A stretch of 64,000 bases of DNA, from positions 496,001 to 560,000 of the forward strand of contig CM074815.1 in assembly GCA_037447605.1 (NCBI GenBank). The letters are read 5' to 3'. The DNA comes from Zygnema circumcarinatum SAG 698-1b (Eukaryota; Plantae; Zygnematophyceae). Within the stretch, counting starts at the first letter, position 1. Every line of letters begins with the position of its first letter. This document shows positions 24,740 to 64,000 of this stretch, piece after piece. The position numbers and the translations under genes are program-made. The notes under the pieces were generated by a model. It was not told the origin of the DNA. It saw only the letters and a list, made by a program, of their open reading frames with translations, and ran no database searches.

Positions 24740-26878
24740 ATGGACGGAGAGAAGGGCGACCCCGGCCTCCCTTTTCTTACTTATGACGAGCAATGGCTGG
24801 AATCGTCGGAGGCCCAGTGGCTCTCTCGTCTGGACTTTTTAGGAGACCATTTCTTAGAAGCAGGAATCAAGCTGTTCTCAGAGCTGCGGAAAAGGCGAAA
24901 GAAGCAGATGGAGGACTGCAGTCGTGAGGATGGGCCGGCTGTCGAATTAGCGGCAGAAAAACTGCGGGGTTTGATTCTGAATATGGCAGAGGGCCAAGCC
25001 CCCGGTTTGACAGGAGGTCTCAGCTGGTGGAGAGAATATCTGAAGTCTCTGCCTGTTTGTAAAGGAACGCACATGCTTAATCTCAGCGGCTGCCATTCGG
25101 AAGACATTCCAATATTGGAGAATTCGCCACCTTTAAAGATTCTTTATCCACGTGACAACAATCTATGGCTGAACAACAACCACTTGAGCTCCTTGCCGGC
25201 AGAAATTGGTCAACTTCGTCGATTCAAAGAACTGCGCCTCGACCACAATGAGCTGACCTCGATCCCGGCCGAAATTTCATCTCTAGGGAAACTGGAAGTG
25301 CTATGGTTGAACAGCAACCGCTTGAGCTCTTTGCCGGCAGAAATTAGTCAACTTAGTCGACTCAAAGAACTGCGCCTCGACTACAATGAGCTGACCTCGA
25401 TCCCGGCCGAAATTTCATCTCTAGGGAAACTGGAAGTGCTATGGTTGAACAACAACCGCTTGAGCTCTTTGCCGGCAGAAATTAGTCAACTTAGTCGACT
25501 CAAAGAACTGCGCCTCGACCACAATAAGCTGACCTCGATCCCGGCCGAAATTTCATCTCTAGGGAAATTGGAACTGCTTGATGTGCGCAAGAACCCGCTG
25601 CTCACTTTGCCGACAGTGAAAAATGCCCGTCTGAGACGGTATGCCCCGGGGCTACATAGTGGCTTGATCGCCCTAACGACCGGTGCGGTCATTGTTGATG
25701 CTTACTCGTTGCTTTATCGTCCGAAATACCTGTTGGCATTTCGAGACGAGAAATTCTTGATTTTCTTCACTTCAAAAGCACATCGTGAATTCGAAGAACT
25801 TTGGGAAGACGCGAAAAATGCGCGTGTGAGCAGCGCCGGGGGCCTCGTCATCGACTACTACAATAAACACATTTCCAAAAAGTTGACAATGGAGGAAGCT
25901 GCGTTGCAGATGCTAGCCTGTTCGTTGGTGTATCTGGATGAAAAATTCAGCACCTACAACGGCGACATCGAATTTAATGTAACAGAAGGCGTTTGTCGTG
26001 AATCTGTGCGCTGTTATGCGAAGAAGTACAGAATAAAGGACTCGACTTGCCACGAAGAAGGGTGTGTTGCCTTCCATTTGGTTCCACAAGGCAACGAAGC
26101 AGGTCAGAAAGCTCACATTATTTTGTTTCGTGGAACCAATCCCGATGCGAGGTTTGCTCCAAAGGGTATCCAGGCGGACATGAATCGACATGCAGTTGGG
26201 CTGACAGTGTTCAATAGCGTACAAAAGGATTTACAAAAATGGATGGAGAACGCGCTACGACGTGATGTCGGGGATGGCATCAAGCTGGTGATAACGGGCC
26301 ACAGCCTCGGGGGGGCTTTGGCAATGCACACCTTTGCCAGCATTGAGGAGCCGCTCCATCGGCAAAAAAATGTCAGAGTGGTCACCTTCAACGCTCCTGG
26401 AGTGGATGAAGACACCATTCGAAACAAAATGTGTGGTGGTGGAGTAGATGTAAACTTGATGAAGGGGAACATCTGTATGGTTCGTCACGAGTGGGATATT
26501 GTGCACTACGCAGGAATGCTGCAACCTCCAGGGACTGTTTTGTACACGGGGGATCTTGTAGATAAGCCGTTAAGCTCCTTAGAGGCACTTGCCAAGTCCA
26601 AAGTCCCTGTCTTGGAGCACTTGTGTAATTATGTACTCAGGTCCTGTGGACTGACCGCATCACCTCCCCCTCTTCAGGATCTCATGGAGGCAGTTTTCTA
26701 TGCGCACACGGTTCCGGCTTTTGCGCTCCGCCAGATGCATGGACATAGACCAGTGGTTTCTAAGAGGGTGGAACACAATGAGGGTCATTGGCCTGATGAT
26801 CTCGGAAAGGTTGCCGAATATGTACGATTTTTTCGTGAAAAAATTGGCTCTATCTTGAAAGGATTGCTTCCGAAATAA
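24740..26878 (+). CDS. LRR - class 3 lipase (alpha/beta hydrolase) fusion protein, copy 1; intronless CDS
   Basis: ORF 24578..26878. The start homologous to copy 2 is 24740 (cgtctcaacATG context); the in-frame ATG at 24578 looks like a duplicated start region. It has three 46-aa LRR doublets (LWLNNNRLSSLPAEISQLSRLKELRLDHNELTSIPAEISSLGKLEV), then IILFRGT, VITGHSLGGALA, VVTFNAPG, HEWDIVH and YAHTV. Confidence 0.9.
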   Translation: MDGEKGDPGLPFLTYDEQWLESSEAQWLSRLDFLGDHFLEAGIKLFSELRKRRKKQMEDCSREDGPAVELAAEKLRGLILNMAEGQAPGLTGGLSWWREYLKSLPVCKGTHMLNLSGCHSEDIPILENSPPLKILYPRDNNLWLNNNHLSSLPAEIGQLRRFKELRLDHNELTSIPAEISSLGKLEVLWLNSNRLSSLPAEISQLSRLKELRLDYNELTSIPAEISSLGKLEVLWLNNNRLSSLPAEISQLSRLKELRLDHNKLTSIPAEISSLGKLELLDVRKNPLLTLPTVKNARLRRYAPGLHSGLIALTTGAVIVDAYSLLYRPKYLLAFRDEKFLIFFTSKAHREFEELWEDAKNARVSSAGGLVIDYYNKHISKKLTMEEAALQMLACSLVYLDEKFSTYNGDIEFNVTEGVCRESVRCYAKKYRIKDSTCHEEGCVAFHLVPQGNEAGQKAHIILFRGTNPDARFAPKGIQADMNRHAVGLTVFNSVQKDLQKWMENALRRDVGDGIKLVITGHSLGGALAMHTFASIEEPLHRQKNVRVVTFNAPGVDEDTIRNKMCGGGVDVNLMKGNICMVRHEWDIVHYAGMLQPPGTVLYTGDLVDKPLSSLEALAKSKVPVLEHLCNYVLRSCGLTASPPPLQDLMEAVFYAHTVPAFALRQMHGHRPVVSKRVEHNEGHWPDDLGKVAEYVRFFREKIGSILKGLLPK

Positions 26879-27404
26879 GATCGACTCTCAAAGCGTGGCT
26901 TTTGTCCAGGTGGGCGACCTTTTACTAATGACTGATTAACCGAAGCTATTATTATTGATAGAACTGGAAAGTCAATGTGACTAGCTAATTTTCGGGCCAT
27001 GGCGTTCAGTGGCAATTTATCATGATGCTCTGTCGAATCGTGCCATCGTAGTCTCTGTTCGCACTCTCATAATCAAGATTCTCTTTCGAAGTCAACCTCC
27101 TTGCTATCGCTCTCCCTTGTTCTTCCCCTCCCCATCCCTGCCTCAGCCACTCCCTTCCCCTTCCCTCTCCATCCCAACTACATGTTCCCTCTCTTTCAAA
27201 CGCTAACCCATGGCTTACGCTTTCTCTTCCTTCCCACCCTGAGCGTTTGCAGCCCTCTTTCCTTAAACTGCATTGTAGACCGAGTCTCAGGCTTTTGTTT
27301 TGTCTCTGGAGAGTCTCCGTGGCATTTCTTCCTTTCCTACTCCTTTCCTTCTCTTGCCTCCCCTCTTCCTTCCCCTCCTTGAGCTCTCCTCTCTCTCCCC
27401 CACT

Positions 27405-27615
27405 CCTTTCTCCCACCCCTCTCTCACTTTCTCTAACTCTATCTCTCTCTCTCTCTCGCTCTCACTCTCTTTGTGCAGAGACTAAGGGAGATCTTGAGCA
27501 CGCGAGCGGGAATGGGACTCCAGGTGGCCGACATTCCTCCGCGGTTTTTAGCAGAAAACTTCGGCAGTGAGCGGAATGGGTGGAGAGCTGTAGAAAGGAG
27601 AAGAGGAGGGAGGGA
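27405..27615 (+). pseudogene. Duplicated fragment of NUFIP1 last intron/exon boundary
   Basis: gcagagactaagggagatcttgagcacgcgagcgggaatgggactccaggtggccgacattcctccgcggtttttagcagaaaacttcggcagtgagcggaatggg is homologous to 8511-8600. The upstream ctctctcacttt..ctaactc also matches ~8210. Confidence 0.85.
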
Positions 27616-62734: not shown

Positions 62735-62892
62735 NNNNNNNNNNNNNNNNNNNNNNNNNNNNNNNNNNNNNNNNNNNNNNNNNNNNNNNNNNNNNNNNNN
62801 CTCTCTCTCTCTCTCTCTCTCTCTCTCTCTCTCTCTCTCGCTCTCTCTCTCTCTCTCTCTGCCCGTCCGTCCGTCCGTCCGTCCGTCTCAAC

Positions 62893-64000
62893 ATGAAGAG
62901 AAGGAAGGGAGTCCAAGCGCGTGAGATTCAATACAAGCAATGGCTGAAATCGTCGGAGGCCCAGTGGTCCTCTCTTCGGGATACGTTAGGAGGCCATTTT
63001 TCAAAAGAAGAAATCGAACTGGTCTCAGAGCTGCGGGAATGGCGAAAGAAGGAGATGCAGCACTGCCGTCCTGAGGAGGGGGCGGCTGTCGAATTAGCGG
63101 CAGAAAAACTGGCGGATTTGCTTTTGAATAGCCAATCCTCCGTTTCGACAGGATCTCTCAGCTTGAGGAGAGCCTATCTGAAGTCTCTGCCTGTTTATTT
63201 CAACCGGTCGGGTGACAGAATGGACGAGCTTGATCTCAACGGCTGCCATTTGGGAGTCTTTCCACCATTGAAGAATTGGTCATCTTTAAGGATTCTTTAT
63301 GCACATGGCAACAATTTCAAGGTTATTCCCAGAATTGAGCTGCCGCATCTCCAGACGTTGGACCTTGCCGACAACAAGATAGAAAAAATTATGGATCAAG
63401 AGATGCTGAGTAACCTGACTACCTTCATGGCGAGCAGCAATCAGCTTCGAGAATTTCCAGCGCCCATTCTTCAGTGGAGTGCGCTAGTAGAGCTGAGGTT
63501 GGATGACAATCAGATGTCATGTTTGCCAGAGAGCATAGCCGAACTGAAGCACCTTCAGACTCTATGGCTGAACAACAACTGCTTGAGCTCTCTGCCGGCG
63601 GAAATTGGTCAACTTAGTCGACTGAAAGAATTGCGTCTCGACCACAATGAGCTGACCTCCATCCCGGCCGAAATTTCATCTCTAGGGAAACTGGAACTGC
63701 TCGATGTGCGCAAGAACCTACTGCTCACTTTGCCAAGAGAGAAAAATCTCCGGTTGAGTCTGCGGCCACCGGGGCTAAGTAGTGGCTCTATCGCCCGAAA
63801 GACCTGTGCGGTCATTGTCGATGCTAATTCGTTGCTTGATGGTCCGAAATACCCGTTGGCATTTCAAGACAAGGAAGACTTGATTTCCTTCACTTCAAAA
63901 ATACATCGTGAATTCGAAATTTTTTGGAAAGAAGCGGAACGGGAGCCTGTGAGCAGCGCTGGGGGCCGCGTTATCGACTACTACAACAAACACATTTCCA
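62893..64000 (+). CDS. LRR - (lipase) family copy 3, 5' part; runs off the window end
   Basis: Open frame from cgtctcaacATG (62893) to the edge: MKRRKGVQAREIQYKQWLKSSEAQW..., irregular LRRs as in copy 2, one 46-aa doublet, then linker to VIDYYNKHIS. The lipase domain is expected beyond the window. Confidence 0.88.
   Translation, partial: MKRRKGVQAREIQYKQWLKSSEAQWSSLRDTLGGHFSKEEIELVSELREWRKKEMQHCRPEEGAAVELAAEKLADLLLNSQSSVSTGSLSLRRAYLKSLPVYFNRSGDRMDELDLNGCHLGVFPPLKNWSSLRILYAHGNNFKVIPRIELPHLQTLDLADNKIEKIMDQEMLSNLTTFMASSNQLREFPAPILQWSALVELRLDDNQMSCLPESIAELKHLQTLWLNNNCLSSLPAEIGQLSRLKELRLDHNELTSIPAEISSLGKLELLDVRKNLLLTLPREKNLRLSLRPPGLSSGSIARKTCAVIVDANSLLDGPKYPLAFQDKEDLISFTSKIHREFEIFWKEAEREPVSSAGGRVIDYYNKHIS

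Follow-up and report, generated by a model that had tools for sequence, protein, structure and literature searches.

Several described protein families stand close to a group of genes found in a 64-kb stretch of the zygnematophyte alga Zygnema circumcarinatum SAG 698-1b (assembly GCA_037447605.1, contig CM074815.1, positions 496,001 to 560,000, referred to here as the window, with coordinates counted from its first nucleotide), in which the two complete members encode an array of leucine-rich repeats (LRRs) followed by a class-3 lipase domain. The class-3 lipases, with feruloyl esterase A, share with the algal module the alpha/beta-hydrolase fold, the GHSLG elbow and the Asp that follows strand 7. 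The class-3 lipase-like fold also occurs in EDS1, PAD4 and SAG101, which share a plant-lineage host with the algal proteins, and the Tle effectors of type VI secretion systems (T6SS), as in Enterobacter cloacae (9CYS/7UBZ), belong to the same superfamily. A 23-residue LRR array of the SHOC2/bacterial type at the N-terminus, succeeded by a catalytic or signalling domain, characterizes IpaH, SspH and SlrP (LRR-NEL), XopL, the ROCO/LRRK proteins and SHOC2, and in IpaH the LRR autoinhibits the enzyme. The nearest relatives of the algal lipase are rare prokaryotic stand-alone proteins of 300-560 aa (P0121-P0144), without LRRs, some of them carrying the PF26363 'Phospholipase-like'/Tle-like domain; by similarity the family neighbours DUF2974/Mbeg1-like proteins. 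Lastly, the hydrolase-NLRs of bryophytes (nucleotide-binding LRR proteins with the order Hyd-NB-ARC-LRR) also pair LRRs with an alpha/beta-hydrolase, in a plant lineage that does not flower, and their alpha/beta-hydrolase N-terminal domains can trigger cell death resembling the hypersensitive response in N. benthamiana (PMC11218826).

The genes in the window constitute a family that is expressed and under selection, encoding probably soluble lipases tethered to LRRs, with a catalytic half of bacterial affinity. Because the defining domains of those groups are absent, the encoded proteins classify, on their sequences, as neither members of the EDS1 family nor NLRs, ROCO proteins or IpaH-type ligases. 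We consider it fairly probable that they represent a lineage-specific, duplicated family of LRR-targeted lipases with a bacterially derived catalytic module, in which a partner of the LRRs recruits or regulates the lipase.

Four related loci lie in the window, at positions that an earlier sequence-only reading had given and that open reading frames (ORFs), DNA self-comparison, blastn and tblastn confirm; two are complete ORFs, one runs off the end of the window and one is a relic. Gene 1 (24740-26878, forward strand, 712 aa) is delimited by the ORF listing, Pfam matches to LRR and Lipase_3 models and the triad codons. An in-frame ATG at 24578 would add 54 residues to give a protein of 766 aa, and the source of this extra ATG is the upstream copy of a tandem duplication of ~160 nt (24578-24740) that spans the gene 1 start codon. 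Gene 2 (37237-39474, forward strand) encodes 745 aa in a single exon, and gene 3 (62893-64000, forward strand, ending with the window) is incomplete and open for 369 codons. The inverted copy at 57544-57907 (reverse strand; 57549-57907 in the DNA self-comparison), of which blastn and tblastn recover no more than a start, the helices of the N-terminus and a single LRR, is a relic, since it holds four in-frame stops and one frameshift and ends after that first LRR; its DNA identity to the 5' end of gene 2 is 83%. Genes 1 and 2 share 61% protein identity over their full length, and DNA self-comparison extends the duplicated unit from ~1 kb upstream to ~0.8 kb downstream of the coding sequence. 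All runs of N in the window lie outside the four loci. Six gaps, at 42946-55033, separate gene 2 from the relic and leave nothing but the spacing of the copies in doubt, and a gap of 66 N at 62735-62800, 93 nt upstream of the gene 3 ATG, makes the continuity of the gene 3 5' untranslated region (UTR) and promoter uncertain.

The architecture proposed in the sequence-only reading, a helical N-terminus, 23-residue repeats of the SHOC2 type, a linker and a lipase without an NB-ARC domain, is upheld by Pfam and by an AlphaFold model. In the gene 2 protein the helices occupy residues 7-85, the LRR solenoid 91-338, a disordered linker 341-378 and the lipase 379-745, and together these parts account for the full length of the protein. 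The full-length model has a mean predicted local distance difference test (pLDDT) score of 80 and a predicted template modelling (pTM) score of 0.57, with three long N-terminal helices at pLDDT 65-76, a solenoid of ~11 strands at 85-97 and a linker of ~38 residues at 26-40. The LRR domain of gene 2 (37507-38250, forward strand) comprises about ten repeats with a period of 23 aa and the SHOC2-type consensus LxxLxLxxNxLxxLPxEIxxLxx. Both complete proteins match the Pfam models LRR_8 and LRR_4 (E 1e-18 to 1e-26) and LRR_14, as well as Lipase_3 (PF01764) at 41.9 and 45.2 bits against a cut-off of 22, and neither has a Pfam match to NB-ARC/NACHT, Roc-COR, NEL or the EDS1 EP domain. NCBIfam returned only sub-threshold LRR-effector and SA1320 matches, and the N-terminal ~120 residues have no Pfam match and only generic LRR proteins as Atlas neighbours. 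The N-termini are acidic or polar, and because no hydrophobic segment of transmembrane character and no signal-like N-terminus is present, the proteins are probably soluble and cytosolic. The resemblance to the LRR-then-enzyme proteins is an analogy of layout only, the algal proteins having no NEL, XL-box, Roc-COR or kinase domain and being matched by ROCO proteins through the LRRs only. Compared with the hydrolase-NLRs, the domain order is reversed and NB-ARC is missing.

By profile, fold, Ser and Asp the catalytic module is a class-3 lipase, as far as sequence and model can assign it. In gene 2 it spans 38371-39471 (forward strand) and consists of a helical N-terminal subdomain bearing the EEAALQ motif and an alpha/beta core. 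The motifs GHSLG, EWDIV and YAHT occur in both complete proteins, and the candidate triad that the first reading drew from GHSLG, WDIVH and YAHT proves to be conserved across the family alignment, with Ser556 (38902-38904), Asp620 (39094-39096) and His690 (39304-39306) in gene 2 and Ser522, Asp586 and His656 in gene 1. In the 28-sequence alignment (A1) the Ser, residue 216 in domain numbering, is invariant and Asp280 and His350 are at least 90% conserved; among the nine closest sequences (A2) both Asp and His are invariant. The regions of fungal lipases that hold the catalytic Ser and Asp align, in the family profile, with the Ser of GHSLG and the Asp of 'RHEWDIV' ('H-x-x-D-x-V'). Modelled alone from the 28-row alignment, the module reaches pLDDT 81 and pTM 0.85, and its best matches in the PDB are fungal class-3 lipases and feruloyl esterase A, with Foldseek E-values down to 6e-7. 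Structural alignment by VIA-align gives Z 17.6 to Rhizomucor miehei lipase (4TGL) over 215 residues, within model residues 13-357 and covering the three triad positions; for many fungal lipases and feruloyl esterases Z lies at 14-17.6, over ~200-215 residues. His690 (domain H350), the candidate third member of the triad, lies within the structurally aligned range, and the insert preceding it has low pLDDT. Unlike other class-3 lipases, to which it is only ~20% identical, the algal module has the additional EEAALQ helical subdomain and an insert of ~45 residues before the His, and is fused to LRRs, not secreted. This low-pLDDT insert between Asp and His, present in the algal copies and not in their relatives, might form a lid. 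Similarity to the T6SS lipase effectors is weak (Z 11.4, profile E 8e-4), and the alga has neither an immunity gene nor a secretion context of the kind that surrounds them.

Transcription of at least one copy, without which the sequence-only reading would have been refuted, is established by spliced RNA contigs of gene 2 in four runs. More than 90% of the sampled gene 2 words are found in many public runs of one organism, and contigs of four runs were mapped on 35800-41300 for the structure of the gene 2 transcript. A non-coding 5' exon (36080-36180, forward strand), supported by read depth and junction contigs, has an approximate 5' limit, the contigs diverging at ~36078 beside a (GGAGG)n repeat. 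It is followed by a 5' UTR intron of 800 nt (36181-36980, forward strand, GT..AG), whose junction 36180>36981 was found in 4/4 runs and whose depth falls to zero at 36536-36719 in all four and is near zero over 36352-36903. The coding sequence is spanned by RNA contigs without internal junctions, and a 3' UTR intron of 570 nt (39509-40078, forward strand, GT..AG) has its donor 34 nt past the stop codon; a junction of 39506 with 40077 is present in two contigs, X1 record 6 and X10 record 13, and the boundaries were refined from sequence. These spliced junctions, together with the empty intron depth, identify the runs as RNA and gene 2 as a spliced nuclear gene. The description of the family as intronless accordingly stands for the coding sequence, contained in one exon, and fails for the gene 2 transcript, which has introns in both UTRs. 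For gene 1, 49-78% of the sampled words occur in several RNA-like runs, including X9, which has spliced contigs, and these word shares, in runs shown to be RNA, suggest that gene 1 may be transcribed as well. Homology predicts a 5' UTR intron of 109 nt in gene 1 (24217-24325, forward strand), with the donor and acceptor sequences of the RNA-verified gene 2 intron, and gene 1 also keeps the donor and acceptor contexts of the gene 2 3' UTR intron. Because gene 1 retains these UTR splice sites, the copies arose by DNA duplication and not by retroposition. The 5' exon region is 90% identical between the two genes (36145-36259 in gene 2, 24181-24295 in gene 1), above the ~83% of the coding sequence.

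The spliced 5' UTR of gene 2 is 357 nt long (36080-37236) and contains four upstream ATGs with short upstream ORFs, which suggests that translation of gene 2 may be under upstream-ORF control. In-frame stops precede the ATG in this spliced leader, and they fix the start codon at 37237; a hidden upstream coding exon for gene 2 is ruled out by the same stops. A purine-rich (GGAGG/GGGAGG)n microsatellite lies at 35949-36075, directly upstream of the first exon, and contigs that leave the locus there run into sequence foreign to the window; this sequence past ~36078 most likely represents a paralogue or a jump of the assembly graph at the repeat. One contig of run X20 is without a single base at 38932, in the gene 2 lipase region, and X20 has no coverage of 37272-38007, so this run may sample a paralogue or an allele instead of gene 2. 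Contamination by bacterial DNA is ruled out by the spliceosomal UTR introns, the multi-exon eukaryotic neighbours and the retrotransposon remains.

The local expansion, pseudogenization and turnover of LRR units that had been proposed from the sequence are evident in the self-comparison, in the relic and in the duplication of repeat units. Pairwise Nei-Gojobori estimates give a dS (synonymous divergence) between genes 1 and 2 of 0.34 and a ratio of nonsynonymous to synonymous divergence (dN/dS) of 1.1-2.4 for the N-terminal helices, 0.46-0.61 for the LRRs and 0.62 for the lipase core. Gene 1 is without two irregular N-terminal repeats and has gained double units of 46 residues, and DNA identity between two of these (138 nt each) is 97.8%; gene 3 is one double unit, or two LRRs, shorter than gene 2. 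Since gene 3 is a mosaic, like gene 2 in its N-terminus and LRR and like gene 1 in its linker, exchange has taken place between copies. Differences between genes 1 and 2 fall on 20/30 of the concave 'x' positions of the LRRs and on 25/108 of the other LRR positions (Fisher p 1.6e-5), a distribution that fits a diversifying binding face.

Such dynamics suggest interaction with other organisms as the context of the family, and they invite an explanation in which the proteins are NB-ARC-free immune sensor-executors, the LRR restraining the lipase until it meets a pathogen or danger ligand and the freed lipase then damaging membranes or producing a lipid signal that leads to defence or cell death. 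The turnover of copy number, the pseudogene, the mosaic paralogues, the recent duplication of the 138-nt LRR unit, the high dN/dS and the concentration of divergence on the concave face would all be expected of such a system, and the bryophyte hydrolase-NLR domains that trigger cell death (PMC11218826) provide a precedent for hydrolases as executors. The structural evidence runs the other way. AlphaFold places a disordered linker between the two halves, at a pTM that does not describe a packed, autoinhibited state; no autoinhibitory interface between LRR and lipase is predicted in the full-length model, although a model at this pTM, lacking predicted aligned errors and coordinates, is weak evidence either way. 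There is no oligomerization or switch domain, the LRR units of gene 1 are near-identical to each other, unlike a diversified recognition surface, and PADLOC returned no defence family for either algal protein or for two homologues. On this evidence we judge an immune sensor of this kind unlikely. A more specific version, in which an ancestor of the alga captured a bacterial membrane-attacking lipase, related to effector phospholipases that act between bacteria or on hosts, and this was fused to a diversifying LRR sensor to make an immune receptor and executor in one protein, again NB-ARC-free, appears decidedly unlikely.

The origin of the genes is informed chiefly by the lipase module. A search with the whole protein recovers only LRR proteins (cyanobacterial ROCO, Neochlamydia and SHOC2-like) and is uninformative on the lipase half, and an Atlas shape search with the full-length model likewise returned LRR proteins only. 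An exhaustive search of 1.84 billion representative proteins with the module gave 100 matches at E <=1e-3, none below 1e-30, the best being stand-alone proteins of 360-400 aa at E 9e-25 and 38-40% identity. The LRR motif was found in 0/100 of these relatives, some of which are fused to TPR or PLD domains. The prokaryotic stand-alone family and the algal module share ~330 residues, with EEAALQ, FRGT, the GxxADxD loop, GHSLGGA, TFNAPG, Asp and His, at ~30% identity over the whole aligned domain. Gene contexts were available for eight relatives (P0121-P0125, P0127, P0139, P0143), and 8/8 are gene-dense and prokaryote-like, the features seen including overlapping genes and, among the neighbours, RecG, GreA, homoserine dehydrogenase, dnaX and an RND pump; P0122 lies 2.8 kb from the T6SS genes DotU/IcmF, a linkage seen in 1/8 contexts only. 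One relative is annotated from a Margulisiibacteriota metagenome-assembled genome. Three of the eight have a Ser/Thr protein kinase gene within ~3-5 kb of the lipase homologue (L001 3482-4804, L005 1564-2853, L007 7928-9793), amid many unannotated genes, which may reflect a recurring neighbourhood or a donor-clade effect. The language-model neighbours of the module are bacterial clusters of DUF2974/Mbeg1/Tle-like phospholipases (scores 0.91), and the AFDB cluster matches are 'fungal lipase-type' and DUF2974 proteins. Precomputed annotation assigns PF26363 to homologues P0124, P0143, P0148 and P0228-P0230, and the language-model neighbours carry it too; Pfam scans of the algal proteins found no match to PF26363, a model that the scanned copy may not contain. 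A profile search with A1 yielded nine unnamed proteins only, and no match came from GTDB genomes, scanned with the algal domain and P0122, or from JGI metagenomes, for which the algal domain and the two-paralogue alignment were the queries. A maximum-likelihood tree of 47 rows unites the two algal sequences in a clade (100% support by the Shimodaira-Hasegawa-like approximate likelihood ratio test) on a long stem, lying inside the prokaryote-derived set without a well-supported sister; this tree has no root, and support is weak at its deep nodes. Because the nearest relatives are prokaryote-encoded and not plant lipases or EDS1, a bacterial origin of the catalytic half is indicated, and the sequence comparisons make it most likely that bacteria were the source of the module and that its fusion to an LRR array came afterwards.

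The fusion itself may instead predate the transfer, a bacterial LRR-enzyme effector of the IpaH, XopL or Legionella layout having been acquired whole and then domesticated or tolerated. The uninterrupted coding sequence agrees with this, as do the prokaryotic relatives of the lipase, the presence of bacterial ROCO and Neochlamydia LRR proteins among the best-scoring LRR matches (41-47% identity) and the matching of the LRRs of Xop effectors, these last in a library that holds bacterial models only. Yet none of the 100 lipase relatives has the LRR motif, and no protein of 410-1304 aa with the module was found; the latter blank comes from a word-index search that also missed relatives recovered exhaustively, and is correspondingly weak. 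SHOC2-type LRRs are common in green algae and animals too, so the type of LRR is uninformative on origin, and the window has an ordinary GC content of 51% and the paralogues two conserved spliceosomal UTR introns. Acquisition of the whole gene is on this evidence improbable. The LRR-lipase fusion was encountered in none of the protein, structure or metagenome searches, in which algal proteomes are poorly represented and which included no domain-architecture query, and no description of an LRR-Lipase_3 family was found in the searchable literature, where the Zygnema genome paper lists 'lipases (OG 319)' as an expanded group. The suspicion that this architecture is not a described family is therefore borne out both in the literature and among the lipase-module relatives.

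EDS1 keeps a triad that is not required for signalling, and the algal module could by analogy with EDS1, PAD4 and SAG101 be a non-catalytic, lipase-like scaffold, a platform for interactions or small molecules in which the triad is dispensable. Chains of the EDS1 family match the model at Z ~12, and the relatively high dN/dS of the lipase core would suit such a role. The algal proteins, however, have no EP domain, end ~55 residues after the His and show no evident heterodimer partner; their lipase follows an LRR and is closer to the fungal lipases (Z 17.6 versus 12), and both paralogues retain all of the family-wide motifs, namely FxGT, GHSLGGA, the Asp, the His and the EEAALQ helix. We therefore regard a scaffold function as highly unlikely. 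That the genes are a decaying, selectively neutral recent duplication with incidental transcription, as the dN/dS of 0.6-1.3, the relic and the surroundings rich in transposable elements might suggest, is extremely unlikely, given that transcripts are spliced and well covered, that catalytic and family-invariant residues are all retained, and that ORFs of 712 and 745 codons remain intact at a dS of 0.34, neutral simulation closing the 745-codon ORF of gene 2 in >99.5% of trials (P open <0.005) after only 0.05 substitutions per site, so that selection must be keeping both long ORFs open. Transfer of an entire bacterial effector gene, an EDS1-like scaffold and neutral decay are each less likely than a lipase recruited through its LRRs.

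The recruited-lipase reading may be set out as a sequence of steps. A bacterial catalytic module would have been captured and then joined to an LRR array, and the fused gene would later have gained, or landed in, a spliced transcription unit, to become a lineage-specific nuclear family duplicated both in tandem and to dispersed sites. In the protein, the three-helix N-terminus and about ten LRRs would serve as a protein-binding arm, tethered by the flexible ~38-residue linker to a serine lipase or phospholipase of class 3 (Tle-like/DUF2974-like) in which Ser, Asp and His are all present. The concave face of the LRRs would bind a partner specific to each paralogue, binding would recruit or regulate the lipase, and the lipase would hydrolyse ester bonds of membrane or other lipids.

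Certain considerations weigh against this account. Catalytic activity, substrate, partner binding and any role in defence are inferred only, and the direction of transfer is likewise an inference, from a tree in which most rows are without a taxon. The triad is putative in its geometry, its residues being placed by sequence and structural alignment. High dN/dS could reflect relaxed constraint and not adaptation, and gene conversion confounds pairwise estimates; an excess of differences at concave positions is also expected from structural constraint alone, and the repeat register compared may not be orthologous. Uniqueness, moreover, means only that the combination was not found here, in databases from which the proteomes of related algae, and even the window's own proteins, seem to be absent, and LRRs joined to other Lipase_3 subfamilies may exist elsewhere.

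The remainder of the window contains repeats and fragments of other genes. Just past the mapped part of the gene 2 3' exon, a short stretch at 40338-40583 has an RNA word depth of 1700-3600, carries differing flanks attached at 40338, 40356, 40480 and 40485, and is 84% identical to 34738-34895 and, inverted, to 35146-35308, which has the look of a dispersed repeat with strong transcription. Contigs of 2.0-2.4 kb map on 40672-41152 and exit at 41152 with a common continuation, and this segment is probably an exon of a spliced neighbour gene downstream of gene 2. ORF fragments at 46664-47719 and 51246-52079 (both reverse strand), with an acyl-CoA oxidase N-terminal domain and a tyrosyl-DNA phosphodiesterase, indicate that ordinary multi-exon genes lie between the LRR-lipase copies. 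Remains of a retrotransposon of the long terminal repeat type (58981-62894, reverse strand), broken by N gaps, end right at the gene 3 ATG and include an RNase H region (58981-59679), a reverse transcriptase fragment (59685-60152) and a gag-like ORF with a CCHC knuckle (61458-62894), all on the reverse strand. A 429-aa ORF at 8548-9837 (forward strand) has weak, sub-threshold matches to Torus and CCCH zinc-finger models.

The family adds a domain combination, LRR with class-3 lipase in the absence of a nucleotide-binding switch, that was not found described or encoded elsewhere, and it is likely to give, beside the published bacterial-origin genes of this group, a further example of a streptophyte gene family that took up a bacterial enzyme module. 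Should the proteins be merely LRR-anchored housekeeping lipases, they would amount to a modest lineage-specific curiosity. As a small expressed family with clear catalytic residues, they make the sensor-enzyme hypothesis directly testable by standard assays. No living group is more closely related to land plants than the zygnematophyte algae, and the non-canonical LRR proteins of these algae are relevant to the assembly of plant immunity and signalling; if the genes described here did encode receptor and executor in one protein, they would represent a form of intracellular immunity arrived at independently by the lineage that is sister to land plants.

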